Source: Rebecca billardiae RCC1528 (Eukaryota; Protista; Haptophyta). Taken from it: 64,000 bases of DNA. The notes below the pieces were generated by a model, which was given only the letters and a program-made list of their open reading frames with translations, was not told the origin of the DNA and did no database searches. The position numbers were made by a program, and so were the translations under genes. Of the stretch, positions 7,301 to 61,443 are shown piece after piece; position 1 is the stretch's first letter; every line of letters begins with the position of its first letter. The stretch covers positions 1,364,001 to 1,428,000 of the forward strand of contig OZ251230.1 of assembly GCA_965240325.2 (NCBI GenBank), given 5' to 3'.

Positions 7301-9512
7301 TGCTCCCCGTGGACGAGGAGACGCGCCGGCGCGAGGAGGCCGAGATCCGCCGCGACATGCGCTGGTGGGACCTGCGCTACGTGCCGGAGGACACGCGACT
7401 GCTCGAGACCGTGTTCGCGCGCTCGCACGCTCTCTCCTCTCTCCCCGAGATGCGCCGGGCGCTCGGCCTGCTCGCCGTCGGGCAGATGTGCTACTGCGCG
7501 TCGCAGGGCGTGACCGTCGGCTCGAACCCGGCGCGGCGGAGCACCGCGATCGTCGCGACCAGCGCGTCGATCGTGCTGCTGCTCGCGTGCGCGGTCACGT
7601 ACACGATGGCGCCGGTCGAGTCAGCGCTGCGCATGTCGCCTTCGGACGAGCGCACCAACGAGCGCATCCGCGCGTTTGTCGTCTTCGCGTACATGGCGTA
7701 CGGCGCGATGATCCCGCTGGCGCAGATCGCGAAGGGCGCGTACTTTGGCTCGTTCTCCTCCGCCACGCTGATCGCCTCCGCCGCGCTCGTCTCCTCCGCC
7801 GGCGGCATCCGCTTCCTCGAGGTGTGCGCCATCTCCTCTGTCTGGTTCTTCTCGTGGGTGCTGCAGGGCATGGGCGGCGGCTTTGTGCGCGGCGGCGCGC
7901 CCATCACCGTCTTCGCGGTGAGCGGGCTGGCGGGGCGCGACGGCGAGATCCGGAACGACGACGAGACGGTCTCGGGCGTCACGCTGCGGTGCGCGCCGCG
8001 CGCGCCCCGCGCCGCGCGGAGCGAGGCGGCCTCGGGCGCGCAAGCGCGTGCGCGCGCCGCGCGCGCCGCGCGTACCGCGCCGCGCCGCGCCGCGTGCGCG
8101 GGGCGGGCGCGCGCGCGCTCACGCGCACGCGCTTGCGCGCCGCCGCCGTGCGCCCATGCTGCGCTCCGTGCTCGTGCGGCCGCAGGGAGCCGGACCTGCA
8201 CACGCTCATCGTGCTCATCTTCTTCACAATGGTCGCCGTCTCGTACGCGTCGTACACGTCCGAGTTCTCCAAGCGCAGGCTGTATCTGCTCCTCTTCCGG
8301 ATGTGCGCGCGGCGCGGCGCGGCGCGGCGCGCCGGCGGCGCCGCCGGCCGGCCGGCCGCCGCCCAAGCAGCCAGCCGCGACTGAGCGCGCGCGCGCGTGC
8401 CCGCGCACGCGCGAGGCTCACGCGCGCGCGCGCGTGCTCGGCCGCGCGCCCCCCTTCGCGCGCGCAGGCACAACGAGCTGAGCCGCACCGACGAGCTGCT
8501 GCACAACATGATGCCGGTCTCCGTCGTCTCCAAGCTCAAGGAGCGCGTGCAAGTCGCGGAGCAGCACGACGGTGCGCGCGCGGCGCCGCGGCCCGGCCGG
8601 CCCGAGCGCGCGACGCGCATACTCGGCGCCGCGGACGGCGCGGGCGCGGTGCGCGCCGCCGGCGCCGCTCACCGTCGGCAGTGCCGCCTCGCGCGCTCCT
8701 GCCGCCCCGCCGCGCGCGCCGCGACAGGCGTGCTGCTCCTCTACTCGGACATCGCCGGCTTCACCGCAATGTCACACGCCGTGCGCGATCGGCCGGAGGA
8801 GGTGATTAAAATGCTCAAGCACCTGTTCAAAATCTTCGACGCGCTCACGCTGCAGCACGACCTGTTCAAGGTGCAGACGATCGGGGACGCGTACATCATC
8901 ATGAGCAACGTCGACTCGACCTCGCGCGTCGAGGGCCACCGCTCGCAGCAGGCGATGCACAAGGCGCAGCAGAACGCGCAGGCCATGATCCTGATGGCGT
9001 TTGACATGCTCAAGACGCTCGACGAGTACCCGGCGCCGCACGGCAAGCCGCTGCAGATGCGCATCGGCATCCACTACGGCTCGGTCGCCGCGGGCGTGAT
9101 CGGCACGAAGAAGCTGCGGTACGACATCTTCGGCACCGACGCGCTGCTGGGCAACGCGCTCGAGTCGAACGGCGTGCCCGGCGGGCTCGTCGTCTCGGAG
9201 GAGGTGGTGCCCCTTGTGCGCTCGCTGCCACAGTACACGCTCGTGCAGCATGAGCCCGTGCGCGTAGAGGAGGACGGCCGGCTGATCGGCGAGACGATGA
9301 CGTACCGCGTGCACCACTCGAACCAGCTGGCGATCCAGCGGCTGATCATGCGCGGGCCGTTCGAGCGGCTCGCCGATCACAGCGAGCGGAGGCGGCGGCG
9401 CGAGGCGGCGCGGCTCGCGGCGGACGCCGAGGCGAACGGCGACGGCGACGACGACGCGGGCGCGATCGTCCGGCCGCCGAGGGTACGCGTGCCGATGGGC
9501 GCGGGACTGTGA
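1316..9512 (+). CDS. P4-type ATPase (lipid flippase) fused to a two-domain transmembrane guanylyl cyclase; exons 1316-1402, 1582-7988, 8186-8302, 8468-8571, 8728-9512
   Basis: ATPase motifs ETSNLDGESNLK, NNLVPISLYVT, FTDKTGTLT, KGAD, MLTGDKMETA, AIGDGVNDVSM, followed by TM blocks. Cyclase 1: IFCDIQDF...KMETVG...PQYCLIGDTVNTAARM. Cyclase 2: LYSDIAGF...KVQTIGDAY...RYDIFGTD. Four GT...CAG introns (1403-1581, 7989-8185, 8303-8467, 8572-8727) join all segments in frame. Confidence 0.92.
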
Positions 9513-16514: not shown

Positions 16515-17332
16515 CATTGGTAGTAGATCAAGATGAGAGACGGAGAGAGTAGAGAGAGTCATCGTCGTCTGTGTACTGTCTACTGAACGCGTATTTATTA
16601 TTGAAGTTCAGCGCTACTAGCTGTAGGCAGTCTGTGGATGAGGCCTGGACCGCCCGCCCCTGTCTGTCGTCATTAAACTACTACTGCTCGTCGTCGAGCA
16701 TCATTTGACATATCAACGCTATATCATCATCATCATCACAATGTATATATATATCGTCGCGCATCATCCGTGGTCGGAATCCGTGACAAGTCCGCGCATG
16801 CATCGATGATGATGCATAAAGGCCGCGGTGTACCATCAACGCTTATTATTGAATCTACTAGCTTACAGACGAATACTACTACTGCTACTACTACTACTAC
16901 TACAGTAACTTGAGCTTGATGATATGCTCGATGAATGATGATCACTTCCGACTTCGCCCGCGAGTGCCGGCCGGCCGGGCACCGCCCGGCGGGCACGCGT
17001 CGACGCCAGACGACACCGCCATCAAGACGGTGCGTCGTCGGGCTTCGTCCGCTCTGAGGCGAACTGCCTACTGATATATTGCCCGCCGCTGGACTAACTA
17101 GCTACTAGTAGTAGTGACTACTACTACTGCAAGGACTACTGAAGGAGGGGGGACGACGGCGAGGAGCGCTGATGACGATGATATGATATGATCCGCTTGT
17201 CGCTAGATTGGCTGAGACTGACCGATCCATTGAGTGCAGCTCTATTGAGTACTGACAGCGACGCCTCACCGTTGCATGCCAGCCATGCCTCAACGACTAC
17301 GTTATCCCCTTACCGCAGTTCACTTTGCTTCG

Positions 17333-17518
17333 TATGGAAGCAAAGTTGACGGCGTCCGCTGAGGGCGCCCTGCGGCCAGTCAGGGCGCCTTTGGGCGCTG
17401 AACGCCGCATGACACTGTGCAGGCATGGTCTAGCTACCCTCAGACACCCGCCAGACTGGTCCCTCCAGCTACAATGCCTCCACGATGGCATCCCGCGGCA
17501 GCGCGCCGAGCTGCCGTA
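17333..17518 (+). repeat. Dispersed ~185-bp repeat; direct copy at 24576-24754
   Basis: tatggaag.aaagttgacggcg.ccgctga...gctaccctcagaca...tccctccagctaca...gcctccacgatggcatc.cgcggcagcg.gccgagctgccgta is present in both. Confidence 0.8.
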
Positions 17519-18311
17519 CGGGCGTGTCGTGCCCGCCAGGCTGGCCGTGTGCCCGCGACACCCGGCTGCACGCCTTGCAGCTGCTTCAGGCAGGTAGGCG
17601 ATCGGTCGAGATGGCTGTAGGCGGTGTACGTACTGCACGCGCTGGTCTGCGCGCGTTCACCTGACTCGTCGCGCTGAACTCACTCACCTGCCAGTCGCGC
17701 GTGACACGCTTGGCGGCTTGCCGCACGCAGCAGCCGCAGGCCGCGCGCGCGGCGTGATTGCCGAGTGCAAGTCAGCCAGGAGCTCGGCGGGATGGGCGGT
17801 CATGTTTCTTCGTCTGTTTCGGTGTCGATCACATGCGCGACGCGCGCGCCCCGCTGCGCAAGTACACCCTCCTCATTGCCGACGTCACACAGGAAGCCGC
17901 ATGATGGATCTCGAGCTCGGAGAGCAGCGTCCGAGCACCACAGGCACTGACTGGCAGCCCGAGAGCCGACCGGCGGGTGACGTCCTTCACCCCGCCTGAT
18001 GCGGTACCGCGTGCGGCACCATACCGCAGCGATACGAGCACCTCAGAGGCGAATTGAGCACCCCTCAAAACTTTGCTTCTGGGCGTGCTCGAACACTCGT
18101 TTGGCACTCCGTTTGGACGCCGTGGCACCGGAGAAGGGGGAGGGCGGCGGCGATGAGGCTCGGGTGGCCCACGAACATGCTCACAAAGATGCCTCTCAGC
18201 CATCGCGCGCCCTCTCGCGGCGTCCACCTGCCCGCCGAGCACGCACCCGCGGGGGCGAACCCATCTTTGCTTCGTACAGAAGCAACCTGCGGTCGGAGGG
18301 GATAGTACCCC

Positions 18312-19426
18312 CAAGGGTGTCCAGGGTCCGCAACAGCCAGTGCGCAGCGCGGCAGAGGCTGTGACATCGCGAGGTCGCCGCTCGCCAGTGGGACTCGCCC
18401 GCCCGCCGCCGTGCACGGTGGCCGAGCCGCTCGCGCCGTGCGCTCCTGCGGCCGTCGGATCGGGCTGCGTAGGCGGCGCGCGGCGTGGGCCGTCGCAGAG
18501 CCACCCAGCGCCCCTCGCTGCGCCGCGCGCCTTCCTCGTCCTCGCCTCCTCCGCGCCTTGAAGCAGCACGCACACGCGCGGCGCCGCCACAAAAGCAGCG
18601 CAGGCGCTCGCGTGCAAGCGTGCGCGCGCGCAGCGCGACGGGCTCGACTCGGGGCTCGCGCCGCTGCGGGGGCATGCAGCACCATCCCATGCGCGCGCGA
18701 CGCCACCTCGAGCCTGCGCGTTTGACCGTCAGTGCACGCTGATGCACGTTACAAAATGGTCTGACTTGGCATCATCACACGTGCGACGGAAGCTTCCACA
18801 ACGGGCCTTGAGGGCGTCGACGCGATCGATGCGGAGACGGTCATGCTTGCGTGCGCTTCTCTTGTGGTCTCCACGCGTGCTGAGAAGCGCCGCGTACGTA
18901 GCTGTCATCGTGTCTTGCCTAAGAAGTTGTCCTGACGCATGGCAGGTTCTGGTCAGATTGGGCCTACTTCAACACGAGGACGTGTGAGCATTTGGCGCGT
19001 GACGGTCACAGCGATGCGCAGGCTCGAGGTGGCGTCGCGCGCGCATGGGATGGTGCTGCATGCCCCCGCAGCGGCGCGAGCCCCGAGTCGAGCCCGTCGC
19101 GCTGCGCGCGCGCACGCTTGCACGCGAGCGCCTGCGCTGCTTTTGTGGCGGCGCCGCGCGTGTGCGTGCTGCTTCAAGGCGCGGAGGAGGCGAGGACGAG
19201 GAAGGCGCGCGGCGCAGCGAGGGGCGCTGGGTGGCTCTGCGACGGCCCACGCCGCGCGCCGCCTACGCAGCCCGATCCGACGGCCGCAGGAGCGCACGGC
19301 GCGAGCGGCTCGGCCACCGTGCACGGCGGCGGGCGGGCGAGTCCCACTGGCGAGCGGCGACCTCGCGATGTCACAGCCTCTGCCGCGCTGCGCACTGGCT
19401 GTTATTGCGGACCCTGGACACCCTTG
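18312..19426. mobile_element. Foldback DNA transposon A (1115 bp): TIRs 18312-18719 and 19016-19426, 7-bp TSD GTACCCC
   Basis: The arms are reverse complements, apparently differing only by a 3-nt indel. Termini are CAAGGG...CCCTTG. gtacccc occurs at 18305-18311 and 19427-19433. No transposase ORF. Confidence 0.92.
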
Positions 19427-21203
19427 GTACCCCGGAACGCCGCAGATCAAAAGGCGGGAACCGGACATGTCGTTGGTCGGCCGGCCGGCGATGGCGGTAC
19501 GCGCTGCCGGCTGCCCTCGCGTGTTCGATCGGCTTCTTCAACATCCGCGGCGCACGTCTGCGCCGATGGGTCCGGCGCTCACGCGCGAGCGCGAGGCACC
19601 GAGTGCATCGACGCTTGCCGGGAACTCTGGCAAGAGCCCGAGCAGTGGCCGCGCGATCCCTCACGACGACGGCTCGCATGATGGCTCAGAGGAGGAGCCG
19701 AACGTCGGCTACCAGCCATATTCGCTGCAGGTCGAGGTCGGAGTCGGAGGGCGTGGACGGCGAGAACGGCGCCTCACGGGACGCCATCGCCCGCCAGGTA
19801 TGGCAGTGTGGGGAATGCGACGACAGGCAGGGCCCTGGCGCGGGCATGTACGCGCAGCTGGTGCAACGCGGAGCGCAACCAGGGCGGTAGAGGCTTTGGG
19901 CTGCACAGCTACCCCCAGCTGTCGCTCGGCTTCAAGCTGCGCAACCGCGGGCTCAATGCAGCAGCAGGGGCGCTGCCGCTGTAGCGGCGACTCGAGGGCG
20001 CGGTGCCCGGGTTCGTGCCGAAGAAGGGCGACCACATATCAGCATGCAGCCCTTCCGGCACGCGGTGGAGACAGTACGCGCACCTGCTGCGCGGGCGGCC
20101 GCACGAGGTTGACGCGGCACCGGCCGCGCGGGTCTCCGGGTACAAGGAGCTGCACACACGGGCGGCCGCGGCCCGGGCAACACGAGGCGCGGGTGCGTCG
20201 GAAGCGGCGCGCGCGCCTGCAAGCGCTTCGAGCCATTCTGGTCACACGCGCGGCAGCACCGCATGCCCCAGCCGCAGCTGCCGCCGCCGTCGGAGGAGCC
20301 AATCGTGACTTGTGGAGTCTAATCATTCCCGCCAAATCCCGAGCTTGCACCTGCGAGCGCGCCTGCTGCAGCACCCGCCGCCACGGCGCCCGCTGCTGCC
20401 CACGGTGCGCCTCGTGGCCGCGGCGCGCAACGGTCACTCAGCCTCGGCGCACGCGCCGACGGGCAGGGCGGCCCGGCTGCGCGCGCGGCAGTAGGCAGCC
20501 CACCGCGGGGGGCGAAGCGCACGCGCCACGCGGAGAGCAACTCGCCACTGTGGCAGCTATCACTATCGAGCCCGGAGCACCGGCGTAAGCGCCGCCAATC
20601 AGAGCCGCCGCTCGTGCTCAATCGCTTGGCAGAGGCGTCAGACGCGTCACCGAGCAAGCGGGCACGACCCGCGCCCCGTCGTGCGTCGCTGCCTGCCGCC
20701 TAGCCTCAGAGGCGGTCAGTATCGGCCGCGCGCGAGGCAAGCGGGGCCAGCGGGGCGTTAGACGCGCGCATAGCCTTCGTCCCGCGTGATGCAGCCGTTG
20801 GCTAGCTTTCAGATGGCCGCGGCCCTGGCAGACGAGCCTCTTCTTAGCCCACACGGCCAGCCTCGCGAGTAGCACCGCTCGTGCGACGTCGCGCCCGCGG
20901 GCTCCTCAGAGGGTAGCTCGACGGCGAGCCTCGCGCTCGCTCGGCATCGCCATTCTTAGCATGCCCGCCGGTTGGGCCGCCCAGAGCACTCACGTGGCCC
21001 GACGGCACGCGCCGTGTACACCTTAAGAACGCCCATATATGGCCGTAACCGTTATGTGACGAAACTGTAACTACCAATACTACCATGTAACTCCGCGGCG
21101 GCGTTCCGGGATACGATGGCGGTCGTATAATACGTACGTCGGTCACTCACGATCGGAATGACGACTCTGCTGAGTCTGCTCGGAATGACGATGACTGCTC
21201 TGA

Positions 21204-23186
21204 CTAATCATCGGCGTCGTCATCATCATCATTGTCGTCGTCGTCAGAATCCATTGATGACAGCTCGGCGGGTGAGCCGCCAGCCGCCGCCGCCGCCGCC
21301 GCCGCTTGCTGCTGCGCTTGCTCGAACGGGTGCGGGGCCATCATCTGGTGCCCGCCCATCATCTCGTCGGCATCTGCTTCCTCGACAGCGCGAAGCACTC
21401 GGCCGAGCCAGAAGCTCAGGTGGCCACCAGCGAGGCAGAAGTCCAGCGGGCGCAGCGTGCCCCGGCCGATCTCCAACTGAATATCGCCCCGCGCGGAGCG
21501 CCACTCCTGCCTGAGCTCGTCGGCGAGCTTGCGAATATCGGCGCCCTCCCGCAAGGTCTGCACGTGCTCCAACCGGCGCAGGATGTACTCGGGCTCGGCG
21601 CGCTCGGCCATGGTCGTGGCGCCGACGACCTCAGGCTGTGCGTGACCGATCATGTCGTAGGCGAGGGCAGTGGCGGCACGCCCGCGCTCGCCGATCGGCG
21701 CCGTCTCGTCCGTGACGAGCAAGCAGAGCGCCTTGGCCGCATTCGAGAGGTACACGCTCGGCTCGAAAGGGTGGTTCAGGTTGCCGCGGGCAACGTCGCC
21801 TTCCTTGAACGTGAATGATCCGAGGCCCAGCGCGTCGAGGGTGTCCATGCATGGGTACAGCAGGCCGCGCGAGTGGGCGAAGGTTTCGAACCACCCGAGC
21901 GCGTCAGCGGCGGCGCCTGTCGCCCACTGCGTGGCCTGCCCGGAGAGAGCGGCGTTCAGCGCGGCACGCTCGCATGGGGGGTAGTCCAATTCCGCCACGC
22001 CAGCGTGCAAACACAGCACGAGCGCCCGCAGCCCTCCGTGCAGGGATATCGCGCGGCTGCAGAACGCCATCATCACTGCCTCACTGGTGTCGGCATCGCC
22101 GCCGTCCTCGCCGTCGCCAGCGACGCTGCCAGCGCCGGAAGTGAGAGCGACGAACTGACGAAGCGTTGGAGGCACGTGCTCGAACAGCCCGACCAGCCGG
22201 CAGGCCAGGCAGCCGAGCGCTTGTGCAGCGACCATGCGCTCGGCGCCGCCCTCTCCCGTTGGGCCACACACCTGGCTCAGCATGCGGCATGCTAAGCACG
22301 CCACGTCCACGTCGAGCACCTCCTCGTCGAATGCGACCATGCGTGGATGTGCTTGGCCGCCGCCATCCGCAGCAGCAGGCGAAGCGGCTGGAGCAGGGGC
22401 GCCTGCATCCGCGGGTAGGGCCATCGGAGCCGCGCAGTACTCGCACACAGGAAGTAGCCGCCCCGCGCGCAGGCGGCCACAGCCGCGATCTGCTTCGTTC
22501 TCGGCCTCATCGTGCGCGGGTGCATGCGCTTCCCCAGCACCCTCCGAGCCCGAGGCCTCCTCCTCCGCCGCCGCCGCTTCTTCCTCCTGCTGATGCTCCG
22601 CGCCCTGCTCCTCCGCCGCCTCGCGGAGCATGAGCGAGCGGAAGGAGCCCGTGAACACGACGCACGCCCGGAAGAATTTCTCCTCGATCGGCAGCGCGGA
22701 ACGCAGCTGGCGCGGCGCCTCGCGCTGCTCCTCGCCAGTCTCTGCGTTGCTCTCGTCGGGCACCGGCGCTTGCGCAGCCGCCGCCGCTCGCATCACCACG
22801 AGCTGGTGTGCTCGTTCGGTGGCCACCTCCCGGAGGGCTGCGAGAGCGTCTCGCAGCGTGACCCTGGTCGCGGTGTGGTGCAGCATCTCGATTCGCTCCG
22901 TGACGATGGTCCGCGGCCACGGCGACGAATGGCACGCGTGGTTGACACAGGTGAATGCAACGACGGGCATCATGTCGCTCAGCTCGATAGCACCCCCCTC
23001 GGTGGGAATTGGCAGGTGGTGAAGGATGGCGGCCACAAGGTCCGGAGTCGTGAAGACGGCTTGTGCGGGGCTGTCGGCCGCAATCTCGCGCGCAGCGAGA
23101 GTCCCGAGAGCGCTCGCCGAGCCGCCAGCGCGACTGGCGTCGCTCGGGCTGTCTGCAGCCGACGAGCGAGCAGAGGAGAGCAGCAT
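21204..23186 (-). CDS. Hypothetical protein with F-box-like N-terminal motif, helical/ARM-like body and acidic C-terminus
   Basis: Long coding-like ORF; AVFTTPDLVAAILHHLP resembles an F-box start; CEYC and CLAC motifs; DDDD tail. ATG 23186 was chosen because the upstream extension runs into foldback B. Confidence 0.6.
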   Translation of the reverse strand: MLLSSARSSAADSPSDASRAGGSASALGTLAAREIAADSPAQAVFTTPDLVAAILHHLPIPTEGGAIELSDMMPVVAFTCVNHACHSSPWPRTIVTERIEMLHHTATRVTLRDALAALREVATERAHQLVVMRAAAAAQAPVPDESNAETGEEQREAPRQLRSALPIEEKFFRACVVFTGSFRSLMLREAAEEQGAEHQQEEEAAAAEEEASGSEGAGEAHAPAHDEAENEADRGCGRLRAGRLLPVCEYCAAPMALPADAGAPAPAASPAAADGGGQAHPRMVAFDEEVLDVDVACLACRMLSQVCGPTGEGGAERMVAAQALGCLACRLVGLFEHVPPTLRQFVALTSGAGSVAGDGEDGGDADTSEAVMMAFCSRAISLHGGLRALVLCLHAGVAELDYPPCERAALNAALSGQATQWATGAAADALGWFETFAHSRGLLYPCMDTLDALGLGSFTFKEGDVARGNLNHPFEPSVYLSNAAKALCLLVTDETAPIGERGRAATALAYDMIGHAQPEVVGATTMAERAEPEYILRRLEHVQTLREGADIRKLADELRQEWRSARGDIQLEIGRGTLRPLDFCLAGGHLSFWLGRVLRAVEEADADEMMGGHQMMAPHPFEQAQQQAAAAAAAAGGSPAELSSMDSDDDDNDDDDDADD

Positions 23187-23305
23187 CGGGTTCGCAGGGG
23201 CGACCGTGGCAGCGCCCCGCCGCCCCGGCCGGGGCTCATCTAAGGTTCCAGAATCCACATCGAGCCCCCGACGACCTCGGCACGGGATCAACCTCGAAGT
23301 CGAGG

Positions 23306-24427
23306 CAAGGGGAGTCAGGGTACAGCACGTCCAGTTGGGCTGCAGCTGGAGCTTGGGTCCAAAAGCTTCCCGCCGCGCAGCGGCACTCGCCGCCGCCGCC
23401 GCCGTCGATGGGCGGTTGTGGCGCGCACGGCGTGAGCCGCTGCGGGCGCTGAGGTGCGCGCGACGGCGGCGCGCCCGGCGGCGCTGCTGTAGGAGACCAC
23501 TGCCCTCCTCTCTGCCCCGCGCGCTTCGCTCGTCGTCGCCGTCTCCGCGCCTGCGACCAGCGCGCACGCGATCGCCGCACCGCCCGGCAGCCGGGGCAAT
23601 CTCAGCCGTGACTGCGCATGTGCGTCGCGACCTGGTCGGCCCAGCGCGCGAGGCGCGTGTGGGCGAGGCAGGGCCAGTGTGGCCGCGCGCCATGCCGCCT
23701 CGACCTTGCGCCGGTGGGCATGTCGCCGGCCTTGCACCTCTGTCGACAACGTTGACAACCAATGCGGCACGCAAGCGCAGACGTCAGTGTGCACGATCGA
23801 GGCAGTAGGCGTACAGACGCGATAGTTGCAGAGCCTTTTGTGATCATGCGAGTCATGCATTGTCAGCGACTCTCGCCCAGGTCGTCTGCGCGCTGAACTG
23901 ACGTTTTGACTGAGTGCCTCGAGATCGCCTCGACGATGGCCCGTGCATTGCTTGAACACTCACCACAGTCCAAGCGGGCAACCAGACACATGTGCTCAGT
24001 TCCCTGTTGTACGCTCTGATGGGCTTACTTGAGGCGGCATGGCGCGCGGCCACACTGGTCCTACCTCGCCCACACGCGCCTCGCGCGCTGGGCCGACCAG
24101 GTCGCGACGCACATGCGCAGTCACGGCTGAGATTGCCCCGGCGGCCGGGCGGTGCGGCGCTCGCGTGCGCGCTGAGTCGCAGGCGCGGAGACGGCGACGA
24201 CGAGCGAAGCGCGCGGGGCAGAGAGGAGGGCAGAGGCCTCCTACAGCAGCGCCGCCGGGCGCGCCGCCGTCGCGCGCACCTCAGCGCCCGCAGTGGCTCA
24301 CGCCGTGCGCGCCACAACCGCCCCTCGACGGCGGCGGCGGCGGCGAGTGCCGCTGCGCCGCGGGAAGCTTTTGGACCCAAGCTCCAGCTGCAGCCCAACT
24401 GGACGTGCTGTACCCTGACTCCCCTTG
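23306..24427. mobile_element. Foldback DNA transposon B (1122 bp): TIRs 23306-23701 and 24031-24427, 7-bp TSD GTCGAGG
   Basis: Reverse-complementary arms with roughly ten differences. Termini are CAAGGGGAGTCAGGG...CCCTGACTCCCCTTG. gtcgagg occurs at 23299-23305 and 24428-24434. Confidence 0.92.
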
Positions 24428-24575
24428 GTCGAGGCAAGGGTCGGACATCCTGAAAGTGCTCGCGACACCCAGACCGGCGGCCCAACTGGTATTAATATTT
24501 GCGTGCAGTTGAAGTTCACAATTGGCGGCGTTCACAGTTTGCCTCGCCGTACTGATGTTGAGTGATGTACGACCA

Positions 24576-24754
24576 TATGGAAGTAAAGTTGACGGCGGCC
24601 GCTGATGAGCGCGCCTTGCGGCCAGGCCAGTCCACGCCTTTGAGCGCTGAACGCGGCGTGGTCGCTACCCTCAGACAGCCGTCAGCCTACTCCCTCCAGC
24701 TACAGTACAACGCCTCCACGATGGCATCGCGCGGCAGCGTGCCGAGCTGCCGTA
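24576..24754 (+). repeat. Second copy of the 17333-17518 repeat
   Basis: Direct alignment by eye, with several short indels. Confidence 0.8.
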
Positions 24755-24893
24755 GTGCCGGCCAGGTCGGGCGTCCGCCCGCGTCAGGGCCGGCGCCGCT
24801 GCGCATGACAGCAGACAGCTGTAGCGCAAACAGGGCCCATCATCGGGCCAAGGGGGTTCGAATCGGGCAGCCCGACCCACGGCTGGCGGCCAC

Positions 24894-27800
24894 TTACGCG
24901 CATGGCGGGTCACTGCGCAGCTGGCGCGCTGATGGTGCCCCTCCCTCCAGCTCGGCCGCGAGCTCGGCGAAGCCGGCCTTGCGAGCGAGATCTGCGGGGG
25001 TCTGGCCACGCACGTCGGGCTCCAGCGCGCGCTCGCCGCCGAGCTGCGCCGGCCCCGAGCGCAGCCAAGTGCACAGCTGCGCGTGGCCACCGTACGCCGC
25101 CTTGTGGAGCGCGTGGTGACCCTGCGTGTTGGGCGCGCCCAGATCAACCCCATGGGCGAGGAGCCATGCACACGCGTCCAGTTGCCCGGCGAGCGCAGCA
25201 AAGTGCGCGGCGGAGCAGACCCATCGGTTCGAGTGTGCGACGTCCGCACCGCGCCGTGCGAGCGCATCGCACGCTCGCACGTGGCCACCCCATGCGGCGA
25301 GCTGCAGTGGGGTCGTCCCGTCCTTCGTCAGCGCGTCGACGCCGAGGCCGCACGCATCGATCAGCCACGCGGCGACGCGCACGTGGCCGTGACGTGCGGC
25401 CCAGTGCAACGCGGTGCGCCCAGACTTGCGATCGCGCGCGTCCGCGCGCGCGCCGCTCGCGACGAGGAGCTGGCACACGCCCAGGTGGCCACCAGACGCG
25501 GCCCAGTGGAGCCCCGGGCCGCCGAATCGATCGGTGGTGTCCACGCTCCAGCCGCCACGGAGCGCAGCGCGCACAGCCGCCGTGTCCCCGCGCCGGCACG
25601 CGTCGAGCGTCGGCTCGAGCTGGAAAGCCTCGTCTGCGGCGCTCCGCGCGGCGCGCGCCTCGAGCAGCTTTGCGCGCGTGCCGTTGTGGTGCGCCCCTTC
25701 ATCGCCGGTGCGCGTGGCCGCCAGATTGGGCGCGGGCTCGCCATCCACCGCGCTCGCCGAGGCGCTGAGCGTCGTGTGTGCCCGGAGCCGCGCCACGATG
25801 GCCGACGCCAGAGCGCGCGGCGTCGGGTGCTCGAGCGGCGCGGTCGGCGGGAGCTCCAGGCTGCGCGCCGCGGCTGGCGAGGCGGTCGGATCGCGGCTCG
25901 TGCCTCCGAGCGCCGTACGCAGCTCGGCCCCTAGCGTGTCCAGCAGCACGCCCACGCCGAGTGAGTCGAGGCCAGCCGATGAGAAGGGCGTCTCTGCGCC
26001 GGGCCACGCCGCGACTGCCGGCGCGTCCGTCTCGGCGGTTGCAGCGCGGCCGTCGACGATCGCGGCCGCGCGCGCGGCGGCGCGGAGCACGGCGGCCTCG
26101 ACAGCCCGAGCCAACGGGTCGGCCGCCGGCTCGACGCCGCCGTGCGCGCCTCGTCCGGACGCCTCCGCGGCGGTGGGCGCCGGCAGGATCTGGCCGGCCG
26201 CGTGCAAGTCAGCGCGGGCAGTGGCCGAGCCGTGGCCGTCACGTGCTGCTTCCGCCGAGGGCGACGGCCGGTCACCCGGGCTCGCGCTGCTGCGCTCTGG
26301 CCTGATCGTAGCGCCTGTGCCCGGCGTGGCTGGCGGCAGCAGCGGCAGCGCCCCCCTGTCAAGCTTGCCCGCGGCCGAGAGCGGCAGCGCACGCACCGGC
26401 ACGAGCCGCGCCGGCGCCATGTACGGAGGCAGCCAGCGCCGAGCATGCGCCAACAGCTCATGCTCGAGGGACGGCCAGCCGGCGTCGAGGAGCGTCGCGG
26501 TGTCCACCAGGCTGTGCGCCCCAGCCCGGCCATCCGAGCTGCCGCCCAGGCCCGGCGCAGCCGGCGTGGAAGCGGCTGCTGCCTCAGTCTCAGCGCCGGG
26601 GTCAGCACCGCTGCCGAGAGTAGCCCTTGGCGGGTTCGGACCGCCGAGCCATGGCTGTCGCTGCGGGGCTTGGCGCGCGCGAGGCTCGTCGAGCGCGTGC
26701 TGCACGCCATTCTGCGGTCGTGCCTCGGCCCACGCCGCGCGGCCGACCGCTCCGACCCTCTCGACTGCCGCCTCCGCCTCAGCCGAAGCCCAGTCGAGCC
26801 CAGCGACCGCGGCCTCCACCCAATCCTCACGCCGGGCGGGCCCGTTGGGCGCGAGCGCCGAGCCAGCCGGCGGCGGCGGGGGCGCGCCCGCGCTCGCTGA
26901 AGCGGCCGGGTCGTCGGGGGAGCCGTCGGCCTGCTGCCCAGCGCGGGCATGCTCCTGGGCAGCCGCGGCATCGCGCAGCATCACGTACGCCACCAGCTCC
27001 GCACGGCCAGAAGGGTGCGGCAGTGCAGCAGTGGTCCCTGTCGGCGCAGGCTCGGGCGGTGCAGCGCCTTCGGGGTCAGCGCGCGAGGCGCCAGTCGCGG
27101 GCGTGCGCACGGCGGCGGCGGCGGCCACGACGCGCGCGTGCGTGGCGAGGCACGCCTCCACCTCGCCCAGCTCGATCCGATGCCCGCGCAGCTTGACCTG
27201 CGCCGCGGCGGCGCCGCTCAGACGGCCACCGACCTCCACGATGGGGACACCGCCGCCCCCGCTTCCGCTGGCTGGTCGAATGAGCCGCGCGCGGTCGCCG
27301 GTTCGGAACCAGCGTACGGGCGCGGTGGGCTCTAGGGCGTGGCAGCCGTCCCCTCTGAGCAGCAGCTCCGCAGGCGGCGGGCGTGCGTGCACGAAGCGCC
27401 CGGCGTCGTGCACGCGCGCCGTGGCCGTGCGCTCAGCCGAGGCGCGCCGCACTCCGCGCTCGGCGGCGCGCGGCGCCACGTAGCCCTCCGCCAGGCAGGC
27501 ACCGCCCACCCACAGCTCCCCCTCCACGCCGAAGGCGGCCCACGTGCCGGGGTGCTCGTCGGCGTGCTCGCCACCTTCCTCGTCGCCCGTGCCGCCCGTG
27601 CGCACGGCGCAGAACGAGCGGAGCACAGGCCGCCCGACGGCGCGCGCAACGGCGGCGTGGGCGGCGCGGGGCGGCCGCGCGCCCAAAGCGTCCACAGCCT
27701 CGCACTCCGCTGCGGCGCCCGCGCCGTCGGGCGCCGCGGCGGGCTCGTGCACGCGGCGCGCCGTGCACCAGATCGTCGCCTCGGTCGGGCCGTACACGTT

Positions 27801-28838
27801 GAACAGCGCCGCGCACCGCGTGCTGAGAGGCACCAGCTCAGGCGGCATGGCCTCGCCGCCGCAGATTGCAATCAGACCGCGCGAGCCGGCCCAGCCTGCC
27901 TGGCTGAGGAGGCGGAAGGTGGCGGGCGTCGCCTGCAGAACGAGCGCGGACGGGCCCCACGCCGCGTCGCTGTCGTCCGCACCGAGCACGTGCCCGCCCG
28001 CCGCGCCGGGAGCGCCGGCGTCCTCTCCGTGCTGCGGCTCGGTCCGCGCGCGCGGCGCGCACAGCGGGTGCGGCAGCAACCGGCCGAGGTGCGCGCGCAG
28101 CGCCGCGCCCGAGGACGCGTCGGCGCGCGTGCACAGCACGAGGAGCGGGCCGTAGCACAGGGGCACGAAGATCTCCAGAGCCGAGATGTCGAAGCACACC
28201 GTCGTCACCGCCAGCCACGCGCGCGCCGCGCCGAGCCTGAGGCCATCGCGCCCAGCCGGTCCGTCGACACGCCCGCCAAAGTGCTCGAGCGCGTTGGCGA
28301 GCGCGCCGTGCGAGACGGCGACGCCCTTGGGCGCGCCGGTGGAGCCCGAGGTGTACATCACGTACGCGCGCGCGCGCGCGTCGAGGGCCGGCGGGTAGCT
28401 CCCCACGCCCGCGCCCGCCGCCGGGCGTGGCGAGAGCAGGACACCGTCGTGTGAGAGGACGACGTGCGCGCGCACGCCGGCATCCGCGCCGAGCGCCGCG
28501 CCGACGGCGCCGCAGCTGACGAGAGCGGCGGCGCGAGAGTCCGCCAGCACGTACTGAAGCCGTCGCGTCGGGTGCGATGGATCGAGGGGCACGTAAGCGC
28601 AGCCGGCGAAGAGGATGCCCACGAGCGCGGCGAGGAGCCCAATGCCGCGCTCGGCGCAGACGCCGACGGCATCGCCCTCGCGCACGCCCGCTGCGGTGAG
28701 CGCGTCGGCCACCGCCTCGACGAGGGAGCGCAGCTCTCTGCGCGTCAGCTCGCGCCCATCGAACTCGACGGCCGCCTCGTCGGGGAATGCCGTCCACCGG
28801 CGCGAGACAAGACACGGGAGCAGCGCGTCGGCTGCCAT
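24894..28838 (-). CDS. Single-module NRPS-like protein: adenylation domain, carrier (T) domain, ankyrin repeats
   Basis: A-domain cores AYVPLDPSHP, AYVMYTSGSTGAPKGV, FDIS, NVYGPTEAT, GELWVGG, FRTGD, QVKLRGHRIELGEVE, LPLSAAGKLDR; carrier motif AGLDSLGV; ankyrins GLHWAASGGH, GRTALHWAARHGH, GTTPLQLAAWGGH, SAAHFAALAG, ALHKAAYGGH, GQTPADLA. Confidence 0.9.
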   Translation of the reverse strand: MAADALLPCLVSRRWTAFPDEAAVEFDGRELTRRELRSLVEAVADALTAAGVREGDAVGVCAERGIGLLAALVGILFAGCAYVPLDPSHPTRRLQYVLADSRAAALVSCGAVGAALGADAGVRAHVVLSHDGVLLSPRPAAGAGVGSYPPALDARARAYVMYTSGSTGAPKGVAVSHGALANALEHFGGRVDGPAGRDGLRLGAARAWLAVTTVCFDISALEIFVPLCYGPLLVLCTRADASSGAALRAHLGRLLPHPLCAPRARTEPQHGEDAGAPGAAGGHVLGADDSDAAWGPSALVLQATPATFRLLSQAGWAGSRGLIAICGGEAMPPELVPLSTRCAALFNVYGPTEATIWCTARRVHEPAAAPDGAGAAAECEAVDALGARPPRAAHAAVARAVGRPVLRSFCAVRTGGTGDEEGGEHADEHPGTWAAFGVEGELWVGGACLAEGYVAPRAAERGVRRASAERTATARVHDAGRFVHARPPPAELLLRGDGCHALEPTAPVRWFRTGDRARLIRPASGSGGGGVPIVEVGGRLSGAAAAQVKLRGHRIELGEVEACLATHARVVAAAAAVRTPATGASRADPEGAAPPEPAPTGTTAALPHPSGRAELVAYVMLRDAAAAQEHARAGQQADGSPDDPAASASAGAPPPPPAGSALAPNGPARREDWVEAAVAGLDWASAEAEAAVERVGAVGRAAWAEARPQNGVQHALDEPRARQAPQRQPWLGGPNPPRATLGSGADPGAETEAAAASTPAAPGLGGSSDGRAGAHSLVDTATLLDAGWPSLEHELLAHARRWLPPYMAPARLVPVRALPLSAAGKLDRGALPLLPPATPGTGATIRPERSSASPGDRPSPSAEAARDGHGSATARADLHAAGQILPAPTAAEASGRGAHGGVEPAADPLARAVEAAVLRAAARAAAIVDGRAATAETDAPAVAAWPGAETPFSSAGLDSLGVGVLLDTLGAELRTALGGTSRDPTASPAAARSLELPPTAPLEHPTPRALASAIVARLRAHTTLSASASAVDGEPAPNLAATRTGDEGAHHNGTRAKLLEARAARSAADEAFQLEPTLDACRRGDTAAVRAALRGGWSVDTTDRFGGPGLHWAASGGHLGVCQLLVASGARADARDRKSGRTALHWAARHGHVRVAAWLIDACGLGVDALTKDGTTPLQLAAWGGHVRACDALARRGADVAHSNRWVCSAAHFAALAGQLDACAWLLAHGVDLGAPNTQGHHALHKAAYGGHAQLCTWLRSGPAQLGGERALEPDVRGQTPADLARKAGFAELAAELEGGAPSARQLRSDPPCA

Positions 28839-29095
28839 GCTGATTCTGCTGGAATCTCAGAAATCGACGAGGCAGAAATCTCCTCTCACCAACGAAACGG
28901 TTTCGACTGATGCTCATTGTGGTCGCTTTCCTAAGTGAAAATAGAACCCGAGCTACTAAAGTCTCCTGCTTGGTTGATGCGCGCGCGCCACTTTCGAGAG
29001 CGGGTCAACGTCGAGCGCGTGGACGTGGGTCGCAGACGTGCCCGCCTGCCTCGCGTGCAGCGCGCATTCCGCGCCTCGCGCTTGGCCGTGGCGCC

Positions 29096-32068: not shown

Positions 32069-32299
32069 ATAACCGCGCGCGTCGCGCTCCGCCTTATGGC
32101 GGTCCGGTGTTTACGTTGGGCGGCTGCCTAGCTTGCCTGGGGCCGCCAGACGTCACGGGGGGCCGGGCGGCGAGACAGCGCCCGCCCACAGGGGCGCAGC
32201 GCCAGGCGCCACGCCGGCATGGGCGGCGTCGGCCGGCGCGGTCGAGGCCAGGCCCGGCCCCGACCCCCAGAGACGCTGCGCCCGGCCACGCCCCGACGC

Positions 32300-32800
32300 A
32301 CGCCGTCAGCGCCAAGCGCGTGCCGTCGGGCGGGGCAGCTCCCGGGAAGTACGTGCGGGGCGCAGGCCCCGCCCACCGCCCCGCAGCGGTGATCTCGGCC
32401 GCGGGAAGCCCCAGGAACGGCCAGCGTCGCCACGGCCGAGCGTCGAACCGAGTTGGCGCCAACACACGTTGTGGGAGCCCCAGCGCCCGACACTCATCGT
32501 GCAGCCACGCCAGATACGCCGCGCGAAAGCCTCGCACGCGCGCCAACCCGCCCGGTGTCGGCCGTCGACGGCGGGCAGCACCCCGAGCTCCGCGAAGCGA
32601 CGTCCAGCCAGCGTGCGTAGCCCTGAATCGCCATGCGCCCCTTGGACCTTGGACGCGAAGGGCGAAGCGCCGAAGCCCGCTGTCCGGCTGTGGCAAACCG
32701 CCGGGCCGCCTGCGCTGTGGGAGCGATGGCGGCCGGTGGAAGCGGCGGGGAGTAGGCGACGCACGCCGCGCGAACGAGGACGGTCGCGCGGCACGCGAGC
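32300..32800 (-). pseudogene. Frameshifted C-terminal part of a tyrosine recombinase
   Basis: Spread across frames: RSKG..QG...CCP (~32570-32650), GANSVRRSAVATLA (HxxR-equivalent, ~32420-32460), GLPAAEITAAGRWAGPAPRTYF (GRW and catalytic Tyr, ~32345-32412). Confidence 0.7.
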
Positions 32801-32819
32801 GACGGCGGACGCGCCGCGG

Positions 32820-33601
32820 ATGATCGGCGCGCACGCATGACGATCGGCGCATGATGATCGGCGCGCGCGCATGATCGGCGCATGATGATCGGCGCGCGCG
32901 CATGATGATCGGCGCGCGCGCATGATGATCGGCGCGCGCGCATGATGATCGGCGCATGATGATCGGCGCGGGCGCATGATCGGCGCATGATCGGCGCATG
33001 ATGATCGGCGCGCGCGCGTGATCGGCGCATGATGATCGGCGCGGGCGCATGATCGGCGCATGATCGGCGCGTGATGATCGGCGCGCGCGCATGATCGGCG
33101 CATGATCGGCGCATGATGATCGGCGCGGGCGCATGATCGGCGCATGATCGGCGCATGATCGGCGCATGATCGGCGCATGATCGGCGCATGATGATCGGCG
33201 CGCGCGCATGATCGGCGCATGATGATCGGCGCGGGCGCATGATCGGCGCATGATCGGCGCATGATCGGCGCATGATGATCGGCGCGCGCGCATGATCGGC
33301 GCATGATGATCGGCGCGGGCGCATGATCGGCGCATGATCGGCGCATGATCGGCGCATGATCGGCGCATGATCGGCGCATGATGATCGGCGCGCGCGCATG
33401 ATCGGCGCATGATGATCGGCGCGCGCGCATGATGATCGGCGCATGACGATCGGCGCGCGCGCATGATCGGCGCAAGATGACCGGCGCGCGCGCATGATGA
33501 TCGGCGCGCGCGCATGATGATCGGCGTGCGCGCGTGATGATCGGCGCGCGCGCATGATGCTCGGCGCATGTTGACCGGCGCGCGCGCATGATGAGCGGCG
33601 C
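32820..33601. repeat. Composite minisatellite, about 50 units of (ATG)1-2 ATCGGCGC (GCGCGC/GGGCGC)0-1
   Basis: Directly visible; mostly 11-, 14- and 20-bp units with higher-order ordering and more degenerate edges. Confidence 0.97.
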
Positions 33602-33736
33602 GGACGGTGGCGCGCGGCGCCGCCACCCGCCGCCGCGGCGTCGAAGGCAGCAGCAGCGAACGCCGATGGTTCTTGGCTGGGCCAGGCGAGCATGCCGGGG
33701 GCACGCAGCAGGCGTGCACGATCGGCACTAGCAGGG

Positions 33737-34759
33737 TCAAGGGGCAGGTCGGCCGGCTGAGTCAGCACTGCTGACCCGCCCCGCTGGCTGCTGAGCGGCG
33801 GCGACCGGGCGTTCAGGGCAGGCCGTGCTGATCGCCGGCCGCCGCGAAGGACGCGGCGGCCTCATCCCGGGCACGATCTTGGTCGGCTTGGCCGACGGCG
33901 GCAGACCCGCGGCGCGCAGCGTCGAGCAGTAGAGCTGGAATGCCCGATCGAGGTCCCCCCGGTGCGAGCTCCACCCGAAACCGTCATCGACAAAATTCTT
34001 GAGCTTGAAGCGCAGCTCCCCCGACCAGCGCGCCACGAACGCGTGCCGCAGCAGATCTGAGAGCCGGCAAAACAGGAACGGCGCGGACGCGGCGCCGAAG
34101 GGGAGCGAGGTGTACACGTAGTAGGCGCCCTCCCACCAAATGCAGAGCAGCCACAGATCCTCCGGGCGCACGGCGACGCGCGTGTATGCCGCGTCGATGT
34201 CCACCTTGAAGATCCAGGTGCCGGGGGTCAGATCGGCCAGGAGCTCGTCCAGCGACTCAAAGGTGAACCGCGGCGCGCGGATGTCGGCGTTCACGCCCGA
34301 GGCCGTCATGTCCACGATGAGGCGGAAGTCGTCCTCGTCCTTCGGTACGCAACCGAGCGGCGACACCGCCACTGGCCGCGGCAGGGGCCGGCCGCCGCGC
34401 GCCGGCCCCGCCAGCACGCCCGATGACACATACTCGGCGAGCCGCGCGCGCACAAACTCGGGCTGCGCCAGCGAGGAACGGTGGTTGGGACGGAACCGCG
34501 ACACGCGCGCGCCGCGGTAGAGCAGATCGACGCCGTCACGCAGCTCCACGGACAGGTCAACGCCGGTGAAGGCATGGATGAAGGACGCCAGCGCCACGTA
34601 GTTGCGCTGCATGGCGTTGGGCACGAGACTGTGTGCGAGGTCAGCGCGCAGGCCGGTGCGCGCGACCATCTCGGCGGAGGTGATGGGCGGGCGAGTCATA
34701 GCGAGCGGCGCGCCGCGGAACGCGGCGGGCACCGACAGGGGATCTCGTCGCGCGCCCAC
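33737..34759 (-). CDS. DIRS-type reverse transcriptase, truncated after the catalytic core (no RNase H)
   Basis: NHRS, VSPLGCVPK, FRLIVDM, FKVDIDAAY, LPFGAASAPFLF, NFVDDGF; similarity is lost after KIVPG. Confidence 0.9.
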   Translation of the reverse strand: MGARRDPLSVPAAFRGAPLAMTRPPITSAEMVARTGLRADLAHSLVPNAMQRNYVALASFIHAFTGVDLSVELRDGVDLLYRGARVSRFRPNHRSSLAQPEFVRARLAEYVSSGVLAGPARGGRPLPRPVAVSPLGCVPKDEDDFRLIVDMTASGVNADIRAPRFTFESLDELLADLTPGTWIFKVDIDAAYTRVAVRPEDLWLLCIWWEGAYYVYTSLPFGAASAPFLFCRLSDLLRHAFVARWSGELRFKLKNFVDDGFGWSSHRGDLDRAFQLYCSTLRAAGLPPSAKPTKIVPGMRPPRPSRRPAISTACPERPVAAAQQPAGRVSSADSAGRPAP

Positions 34760-34765
34760 CGCCTC

Positions 34766-36763
34766 CTAGACGCGGCCCACGCCCGTGTGCTGCTGCACGT
34801 GCGCTGTCTCGGCGTGCGCGCCGGCCAAGTGGCCAAGGCTCCCGCACAGAGCGCACTTGGTGGCGTGCGCGAGCGTGAAGTTGTGCTGCATCTGCGCAGA
34901 CGGTTGGCCGCCGGCCGACCGGTACGCGGCGAACAGCGGGCACGCCGCCGCGGAGCAGTCGCCGAATAGCTGGTGCCGTAGGCAGCCGTGCGCGCGGAAG
35001 ACGCGGTGGTTGGCCTCCGAGAGCAGGGGCCGCCCGCTCGCGTCGCACACACCCCCGTACCGCGCCAGCTCGCGCGCCAGCGTCAGCGGCGGCACGCCCC
35101 CCGCAGAGGCGGCGCCCGGGAACGGTTGCGGCAGCGTCCGCGGCGGCCCGCCTGGCGGCGGGGGCGGCGGGCCGGGAGGCGGCGCCTGCGGCCCCGGCGG
35201 GTACGGCGCCGGTGTGTACGGCGCCGGCCCGGGCGCCCAGGCCGAACCCGCCGGCGGCACGTACGTGAGCGCGAGCGGCGCGGGCCCGGGCTGCGCCCCC
35301 TGTACCGGCGGCGCCGGCGGGGCCGGCGCTGCCGCCTGCAGCCCCTGCGGGTACGGCGCCGGCGGGCACAGCGCCGGGCGGGGCGCCCAGGACGATCCTG
35401 CCGAGGGTGCGCACGTGAACGAGAGCGGCACGGGCCCGTGCGGCGCCACCTGCATCGGCGCCGACCACGACCAGCAGCCCCACTCCGCTGCGCCGGGCGC
35501 CGCCCCGCCAAAGCCGGGCGACAGGTCCTGCACCATCAGCGACGGCGGCGGCGGCGGAATCGGCATGCTCCCACCGTAGACGCGCATCAGCGGGCGCATG
35601 GCAAACTTGTCATGGAAGGGGTTGTCGTTCTTGTAGCAGTCGAAGAACGGCTCCCGCCCGCCACCGATGCTCGCCACCAGCGCCGCCACGCCCGAGCGCG
35701 CGTCGAGCACCCGCCCGAGGCTCTCCGAGAATTCAGAGTGGAACTGTGCCGCCGCCCGCCAGTCGCGCGCCTCAGCGAGCTGCATCACGAAGCCCCTGTA
35801 CTCGCGCAGCACCTCGGCGTCACCCGCGCGCGTGCAGAAGCCCTCGGCCTGCTCGACGAGCAGTATGAAGTGGAGCTGGCTGAGGAGCTGGTAGGCCTCG
35901 CGCAGCTCGCCCTTCGTGTTGAAGTAGACGCTTCGATCGACCTGCGCGTGCGGCACCTCAGCCATGTTGAAGGACTCCCAGACGACCGAACCCGCCGCGT
36001 TCGCCGGCACGCCCAAGCCGCGCCGCATGGACGAAAACGCCCCGCGAGCCGGGAAGCTCGGCCTCCCCCCCCCGGTCCCACGGAGTTGGCCGCCCGCGCC
36101 GCCCGCGAGCGCGCAAGCGTTCGCGAACTCGTGCGCGGCCCCCGCAAGGAAGCCAGCCCCACCGAAGGGGACGGGATGCGGCACGAGCGAGCTGGGCGGG
36201 GCGAGGGGCGCCGCCGCGTCCGGCGCCGGCCGGACGCCCCAGGGCGGCGGCCGCGGCGGCGGGACAGAGGTGGGCCCCGTCGGTGCGCCGTCGGCGGGCG
36301 GCGCGCCCGAGTGGCCACCGACCGCCCCATCACCCGCACCGTTGCCGTGGACGCCGCGAAGGAAGTCAGTGAGGCTGTTCGCGAGGTCGGGTGGTAGGCC
36401 AGTCGGAATGCCCGGCTGGCCAGCGGGCGCGGCCGGGGGGGCGGGTGCCTGCGGCTGCGCAGCAGCCGCCGTCGACGCGGCGCCGGCCGCTCACCCGGGC
36501 GCGGGCGCGGGAGCAGCCCCCGCCGTCGTCCTGGCACCGGCCGCCGGCGCGGTCGCGGGCGGCGGCTGGACCGGCAGCGGGCCGAGCTGCTGCACCGGCG
36601 CGGCAGGCGGCAGGGTACTTGCTTGGCGGCCACCCGCGCGCCCACCCCGGCCCCGACCGCGGCCCCCGCCGCCGCGCCCACGAGCGCCGAGGACCTGCTG
36701 GTTGACGACGGCCGCTGCCGCCGCGCGGCGCCGCGACACGCGTTGGACTGCAGGCACCGCCAT
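34766..36763 (-). pseudogene. gag-like ORF1 with Pro-rich region and C-terminal Cys/His fingers; one in-frame TGA at 36491-36493
   Basis: ORF-track entries 36491..36961 and 34766..36184 share a frame and are separated by one TGA; ATG at 36763 lies just inside A1; C-terminal CLRHQLFGDCSAAAC...H...KCALCGSLGH. Confidence 0.7.
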
Positions 36764-53412: not shown

Positions 53413-53547
53413 GGCTGCAACACCTTGATGGTCGTGGACCGATGCAAGTTGCACCGGTCGCTCGGGGAAGTCCGGTGGCGCGCTACTTCAATTTGAGATT
53501 GCACCCGCCGTTCCCAGGTGCACCCCCCGGGCTGTCAGGGTGCCACC

Positions 53548-57508: not shown

Positions 57509-57566
<58 letters not shown>

Positions 57567-61273: not shown

Positions 61274-61443
<170 letters not shown>

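Follow-up and report, generated by a model that had tools for sequence, protein, structure and literature searches.

Two diverged elements of a candidate foldback-type DNA transposon family in the haptophyte Rebecca billardiae

We have analyzed a 64-kb stretch of the genome of the haptophyte Rebecca billardiae RCC1528 (contig OZ251230.1, positions 1,364,001 to 1,428,000; referred to here as the window, with coordinates counted from its first base) which contains two elements of ~1.1 kb, designated A and B, each composed of two long inverted arms that surround a short spacer. We conclude with high confidence that A and B are diverged members of a single non-autonomous, foldback-type family of class II (terminal inverted repeat, TIR) DNA transposons in this GC-rich haptophyte. 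They are real insertions that have been mobile recently, and neither is protein-coding. The structure of the elements, the duplications that flank them, their shared termini, the homology of their arms and the presence of both filled and empty alleles of B can all be observed directly, and the evidence for each is presented below.

Results

Structure of elements A and B

An inverted-repeat search over window positions 17500-25500, followed by direct reading of the sequence, returned two outstanding inverted repeats located ~4 kb from one another. A preliminary description of this DNA had reported two elements with ~400-bp arms, ~300-bp spacers and exact 7-bp duplications starting with GT, and all of these features are confirmed (Table 1). 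Element A (18312-19426, 1115 bp) has the organization GTACCCC, CAAGGGTGTCCAGGGT ... ACCCTGGACACCCTTG, GTACCCC, and element B (23306-24427, 1122 bp) the organization GTCGAGG, CAAGGGGAGTCAGGGT ... ACCCTGACTCCCCTTG, GTCGAGG. Both thus begin with CAAGGG, end with CCCTTG and are flanked by an exact 7-bp duplication, and the arms account for about 72% of the length of each. TIRs bounded by a target-site duplication of fixed length are the hallmark of class II TIR transposons, and long inverted arms that make up most of an element without coding capacity are that of foldback elements; A and B have both.

The arms of element A are 99.3% matched, the sole difference being a 3-bp indel ~20 nt from the tip. 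Its core repeat of 388 nt (18332-18719 versus 19016-19403, 296 nt apart) is 100% complementary and is extended by a 23-nt tip pair (18311-18333 / 19405-19427), and as single-stranded DNA the element is predicted to fold into one uninterrupted stem of ~400 bp (-766 kcal/mol). The arms of element B are matched at 387 of 397 positions (97.5%), and differ by nine substitutions – transitions and transversions mixed – and one 1-bp indel; the repeat is divided into blocks of 252 nt (23306-23557 / 24176-24427, 98%) and 144 nt (23558-23701 / 24031-24174, 97%).

The direct repeat around element B reads as 13 bp (GTCGAGGCAAGGG) owing to an additional CAAGGG that directly follows the right duplication. 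A 13-bp duplication was rejected, as it would give the element asymmetric ends, disagrees with element A, and includes a CAAGGG that is also carried by the empty allele described below. Because the empty allele carries it too, this CAAGGG is part of the target and lies outside of element B. The chance that the element's own terminal hexamer adjoins the duplication is roughly 1 in 1000, and its position may reflect either coincidence or a transposase that prefers targets resembling its own end, as has been proposed for Dada.

Table 1. Coordinates of the component parts of elements A and B in the window.
Feature	Coordinates	Strand	Remarks
Element A, left target-site duplication (GTACCCC)	18305..18311		same 7-mer at 19427-19433
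Element A, left arm, 408 bp, 77% GC, tip CAAGGGTGTCCAGGGT	18312..18719	+	inverted repeat with 19016-19426
Element A, spacer (hairpin loop), 296 bp, 57% GC	18720..19015		between the arms
Element A, right arm, 411 bp	19016..19426	-	3-bp insertion relative to left arm, ~20 nt from tip
Element A, right target-site duplication (GTACCCC)	19427..19433		same 7-mer at 18305-18311
Element B, left target-site duplication (GTCGAGG)	23299..23305		same 7-mer at 24428-24434; single in empty allele L001
Element B, left arm, 396 bp, 76% GC, tip CAAGGGGAGTCAGGGT	23306..23701	+	inverted repeat with 24031-24427
Element B, spacer (hairpin loop), 329 bp, 58% GC	23702..24030		between the arms
Element B, right arm, 397 bp	24031..24427	-	inverted repeat with 23306-23701
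Element B, right target-site duplication (GTCGAGG)	24428..24434		same 7-mer at 23299-23305
CAAGGG directly after right duplication of element B	24435..24440	+	also in empty allele L001

We counted all CAAGGG/CCCTTG pairs that are 50 bp to 20 kb apart in the window, and only A and B, two of the 48 pairs, have identical 7-bp flanks, with 0.003 expected by chance. The extended tip CAAGGG-N4-CAGGGT occurs four times in the window, at the four ends of A and B (0.14 expected), and no degenerate or solo terminus was found elsewhere in the window at up to 3 mismatches. There is also no other long inverted repeat in the window besides a (CA)n(TA)n compound microsatellite of ~170 bp (61285-61453), which explains all of the remaining 'inverted repeats'.

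Element B is a polymorphic insertion

The empty-site evidence covers element B and is provided by a Logan short-read contig (L001, 5659 bp) from an independent data set, ERR14847148; the AMP-binding/ankyrin protein encoded beside element B has a Logan entry of equal length that is roughly 100% identical. The preliminary description had proposed looking for empty sites in other reads, and that of element B is present here. L001 aligns to the window from 30072 to 24428 and then passes straight into 23311-23282, such that comparison with the window minus element B reveals a single GTCGAGG where the window holds two copies and the element. Elsewhere L001 differs by three substitutions (24841, 28525 and 29758) and one 3-bp indel (28966-28968), corresponding to a divergence of about 0.07%. 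These variants are natural rather than homopolymer errors, and L001 therefore represents a separate haplotype or strain that is without element B. Moreover, the 31-mer joining left flank, duplication, CAAGGG and right flank is impossible to derive from the filled allele, and the empty allele must be physically present in the ERR14847148 reads. Element B is thus a polymorphic insertion, with a single copy of the target in its empty site.

The filled and empty alleles have in common a stretch composed of CAAGGG, the duplication and the left flank, and L001 ends exactly 30 nt into it, which corresponds to k-1 for the Logan assembly k that we take to be 31. This end would be the de Bruijn graph branch expected if both alleles share the ERR14847148 sample. 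The other end of the contig lies inside a (CAG)n run. Exact look-ups of the products of the genes flanking element A gave no match in ERR14847148, probably because of single-nucleotide polymorphisms or contig breaks.

The arms of A and B are related throughout their length

The preliminary description had suggested that the A and B arms can be aligned at the tips and, weakly, at the inner ends but nowhere else, with size and geometry being conserved while sequence is not. We compared them by a four-way arm alignment and pairwise global alignments, using shuffled arms as a control, and find instead that the arms are collinear along their full length with 63% identity, compared to 52-54% for the shuffled controls, and that the indels between them are all short. 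Conserved blocks correspond to the tip, alignment columns 76-105 (80%) and alignment columns 196-270 (73-80%); arm positions 197-273 are ungapped at equal offset in A and B and match at 58 of 77 sites (binomial p ~6e-15, using a random per-site match probability of 0.318). The arms are thus diverged homologues with few indels, and their common geometry is explained by shared ancestry alone. Between the spacers no similarity was detected in direct or inverted orientation, and they are 57-58% GC, versus 76-77% GC in the arms.

The possibility that the arms are coding was rejected. There is no codon periodicity, as GC content does not vary with codon position in any frame; the indels between the A and B arms are not multiples of three, and all of the arm frames are open solely because of GC content. 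No Pfam match was obtained for those open reading frames (ORFs) tested that start inside A and B. What Tandem Repeats Finder identified in the arms was limited to trivial runs, of (CGC)n and of an 11-nt unit in 2 copies, with no tandem subrepeats, and the arms do not have the internally repetitive organization of FB and of some Galileo subfamilies.

Arm identity does not date the insertions

Element B has an arm mismatch of 2.5%, compared to the 0.07% background divergence of the haplotypes between which it is polymorphic, and its arm mismatches were most likely carried over from the donor copy. It follows that both arms travel with the element, rather than one arm being re-templated from the other at each jump, and that arm identity does not date the insertion; what arm mismatch dates is the last arm-to-arm homogenization in the lineage. 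The earlier proposal that A is younger than B does not follow, since B is polymorphic on this ~0.07% background despite its mismatched arms. The combination of high arm identity within a copy and low identity between copies is the pattern of Galileo, in which TIRs are >99% identical within a copy and ~7% divergent between copies (PMC2775673), and implies concerted evolution of the arms. We also speculate that the higher GC content of the arms compared to the loop would be in keeping with GC-biased conversion.

Searches for further copies and for a transposase

A tip pattern with 19 specified bases was used for DNA searches, and matched 13 JGI metagenome loci, 19 sites in 596 Gb of prokaryotic genomes (~17 expected) and none in viral contigs. 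Every one of the metagenome and prokaryotic matches is single and their numbers are in line with chance; those in the metagenomes have neither an inverted partner nor BLAST similarity to A or B. Further copies were also sought through spurious gene calls on the arms, but neither a profile built from 11 translations of arm frames nor exact matching of 24 ORFs or frame translations from A, B and their surroundings gave any result. In Diacronema lutheri, neither a CAAGGG...CCCTTG element nor any sequence similar to the arms is present in ~48 kb around the calcium-channel homologue. A reverse-transcriptase ORF in the window (RVT_1, 33737-34759) lies between two long same-strand ORFs without Pfam matches in a region (32094-36184, minus strand) that has a marked AT skew and is probably a retroelement.

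Discussion

A foldback-type family probably mobilized in trans

The data presented here support the view, put forward in the preliminary description, that A and B form one family of transposable elements in a microbial eukaryote, here a haptophyte, and that this family is characterized by long arms, CAAGGG termini and 7-bp duplications. In the mechanism we propose, a trans-acting DDE-type transposase encoded elsewhere in the genome would recognize the ~30-bp tips that A and B have in common (CAAGGG-N4-CAGGGT-N5-AC-N2-CCAGT), with the blocks conserved inside the arms perhaps being recognized as well. It would excise the element and integrate it at staggered cuts 7 bp apart, with gap repair at these cuts generating the 7-bp duplication. 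The arms within a copy would stay near-identical through arm-to-arm gene conversion or mismatch correction in the lineage, which is favored over re-synthesis of an arm at each jump because element B has a 2.5% arm mismatch though recently inserted.

Several observations weigh against this interpretation. Only two copies have been seen, with no further copy in the JGI metagenomes, prokaryotic genomes or viral contigs, and we found no autonomous partner or transposase, the only transposable-element protein found in the window being the reverse transcriptase. In addition, the empty allele of B could in principle stem from a hairpin-promoted precise deletion between the duplications, rather than from a site that was never occupied.

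Which superfamily of transposase?

One tentative source of the mobilizing activity is a hATv-type transposase, hATv being a Repbase subgroup of hAT known only from haptophytes, with 16 members in three of them (Tisochrysis lutea, where the element is named 'Shanks', Chrysochromulina and Emiliania) and with 7-bp duplications (PMC10138859). The host of A and B is likewise a haptophyte, and Shanks is demonstrably active, generates 7-bp duplications and has 80 non-autonomous derivatives; like A and B it has moved recently and has non-autonomous copies, 0.5-3 kb in length, in the vicinity of genes (PMC10138859). The CAAGG termini fit the hAT terminal motif YARNG (PMC3014272), and a 7-bp duplication fits hATv but not canonical hAT, in which it is 8 bp. 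The Shanks tip, TAGGG...CAGGGG, is also laid out like CAAGGG-N4-CAGGGT, with a YA(A)GGG terminus and a second CAGGG 10-15 nt inward, although this similarity is short and there is no sequence similarity beyond this layout of the tip. The TIRs of Shanks are imperfect and only 26 bp long, whereas the arms of A and B are ~400 bp, and its non-autonomous copies are internal-deletion derivatives and not foldbacks. A target preference in common with Shanks was rejected, as a GT start is present in only one of the 24 intact Shanks duplications that were read. No transposase that would place A and B in hATv is linked to either element.

Possible to a similar degree is a transposase of the MuDR/Foldback superfamily, such as those of Drosophila FB or nematode Tm1, or of a superfamily not yet described. 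In FB and Tm1, as in A and B, long inverted arms dominate the element and can form a hairpin or cruciform. However, FB arms are composed of tandem subrepeats and FB duplications are 9 bp, whereas A and B have unique-sequence arms and 7-bp duplications. Mutator-like elements (MULEs) more generally have duplications that are usually 9-10 bp – longer than those seen here – and termini that are usually G-rich at the start and do not begin with CA, both of which count against a MuDR assignment, as does the finding of no transposase linked to A or B. In its favor, long TIRs are reported to be the norm for MULEs (PMC3310237), Tm1 is named a Mutator/Foldback family in the title of its report (PMC3169594), and the duplications quoted for IS256/MuDR range from 4 to 10 bp (PMC10045372), an interval that includes 7 bp.

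Dada elements also generate 6-7 bp duplications, and at their targets a copy of the subterminal motif of the element is found at a constant spacing from the duplication (PMC3706591), which recalls the CAAGGG beside the target of element B. However, Dada elements are without terminal inverted repeats and insert in small nuclear RNA (snRNA) and tRNA genes, whereas A and B have 400-bp TIRs, and scans with Rfam and for tRNAs detected no tRNA or Rfam RNA family anywhere in the window. Dada was excluded on these two grounds, the TIRs of A and B and the lack of a small-RNA target in the window.

The preliminary description had favored the P superfamily, in which A and B would be the haptophyte counterpart of the Drosophila Galileo '2-TIR' copies and be moved by a THAP/P-type transposase. 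We regard this reading as tentative and roughly as probable as that of a haptophyte-specific hAT subgroup, which is no weaker as a candidate. The two-TIR copies of Galileo are non-coding, with ~575-bp TIRs around a ~350-bp middle segment, and Galileo makes 7-bp duplications at a target with the consensus GTAGTAC (PMC2775673). The resemblance of A and B to the two-TIR copies of Galileo, Newton and Kepler is one of described architecture between elements of an insect and of a haptophyte, and includes the 7-bp duplication (7-8 bp in the P superfamily), arms of several hundred bp with a short middle segment, CA...TG termini and the absence of coding capacity. It extends to an arm identity that is much greater within copies than between them, as in GalileoN. 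On this analogy the family may work like the Galileo two-TIR copies. Both duplications also start with GT, for which the chance probability is ~0.01 given composition and allowing for either orientation, and that of A starts with GTAC; this lends the P assignment slight support.

Duplication length, CA terminus and arm length are nevertheless the basis of the P assignment and none of the three is diagnostic. A 7-bp duplication is common to other groups (7 bp in hATv, 6-7 bp in Dada and 4-10 bp in MuDR), and arm length is explicitly unreliable as a classifier, the authors of the Galileo work themselves having said so of its TIRs, which vary from 0.3 to 1.2 kb (PMC3573991). The targets of A and B, GTACCCC and GTCGAGG (n = 2), share the GT start of the Galileo consensus but neither has its AC end, unlike a palindromic Galileo-like target; the arms do not contain the internal tandem repeats of some Galileo subfamilies, and between-copy arm divergence is 37%, compared to ~7% in Galileo. 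No P-type transposase was found in the window or linked to A or B.

Finally, it is very improbable that the inverted arms are assembly artefacts derived from palindromic chimeric reads, for although perfect palindromes are a known artefact of long reads and the independent data set shows the flanks of element B and not its interior, there are two independent loci that have the same termini, homologous yet 37% diverged arms and exact 7-bp target-site duplications, which artefacts do not produce, the empty allele contains exactly one copy of the duplication, and the short-read contig breaks exactly at the 30-mer shared by the junctions.

Genomic context of the elements

The window is ~70% GC and contains long single-exon eukaryotic genes, including a P4-ATPase-guanylate cyclase fusion, a four-domain voltage-gated cation channel, a MOSC/aminotransferase, an amidohydrolase and the AMP-binding plus ankyrin protein. 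The best named relative of the cation channel is in Diacronema lutheri (44% amino-acid identity, 65-70% nucleotide identity), the genome of which is 73% GC with 45% of its genes being single-exon (PMC8379373). These features point to a Pavlovales-like haptophyte as the host, and the lack of near-identical NCBI proteins distinguishes it from D. lutheri itself. Element B is located in a short intergenic region between two minus-strand genes. It lies 467 bp downstream of the AMP-binding/ankyrin gene (24894-28838), counted from the stop codon, and 120 bp upstream of the next gene (21207-23186), counted from the first in-frame ATG (23186); codon periodicity in the latter begins near 23000. Element A lies within a 5.7-kb stretch that has no clear coding periodicity. 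A 20-nt hairpin motif, TTTGCTTCGTAnnGAAGCAA, is present twice on the plus strand (17324-17343 and 18266-18285), ~940 bp apart, with 0.01 occurrences expected by chance; 20 bp separate the end of the second copy from the element A insertion site to its right, and there is no similarity between the surroundings of the two copies.

The gene at 21207-23186 has no Pfam domain and has two paralogues in ERR14847148 (L038 and L040) that are 49-50% identical to it; this looks like a small, lineage-specific family. The product of the single-exon gene at 24894-28838 has ankyrin repeats downstream of an adenylation (AMP-binding) domain, and its nearest relatives among 5.8 billion proteins are bacterial non-ribosomal peptide synthetase modules with ~34% identity, such that the gene may have been acquired horizontally. 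Very long ORFs at 1537-9512 (plus strand) specify a fusion of a P4-type phospholipid-flippase ATPase with guanylate-cyclase catalytic domains, of which the second lies in the adjoining ORF 8397-9512; fusions of this type are best known from alveolates and some stramenopiles. An 1850-codon ORF at 53518-59070 (plus strand) lies in a stretch of 78-79% GC and is without a Pfam match, and is regarded as a putative gene only, as long ORFs overlap on both strands.

Implications for haptophyte mobile DNA

The mobile DNA of haptophytes is poorly catalogued, and the one published Pavlovales genome that we found provides a RepeatModeler summary only, in which long terminal repeat (LTR) elements and long interspersed nuclear elements (LINEs) are dominant (PMC8379373). 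The presence/absence polymorphism of element B indicates that this lineage has cut-and-paste elements that are moving now or were doing so until recently, and because the element is so close to the ATG of one gene and the stop codon of another, the polymorphism could affect expression. Transcription reading through such an element would produce perfect hairpin RNAs of ~400 bp in the neighborhood of genes. Short-read assemblies are also interrupted by perfect palindromes of 400 bp, as seen where L001 ends, and such palindromes can give rise to rearrangements, Galileo in Drosophila being an example.

We tentatively suggest that A and B represent a foldback lineage native to Pavlovales-type haptophytes, within hATv or a superfamily yet to be described, which is currently active and in which concerted evolution preserves the match between the 400-bp arms. 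Were this the case, the lineage would be the first long-TIR or foldback form of that group and a candidate endogenous tool for insertional mutagenesis in these algae, and GC-biased conversion could account for arms of 76% GC around a loop of 57% GC. Identification of an autonomous partner would tell whether the haptophyte elements with 7-bp duplications are all hATv or whether a P-like lineage exists. The main value of elements A and B is that they provide evidence for class II elements being active in Pavlovales-type genomes and direct attention to a transposase that is yet to be characterized.

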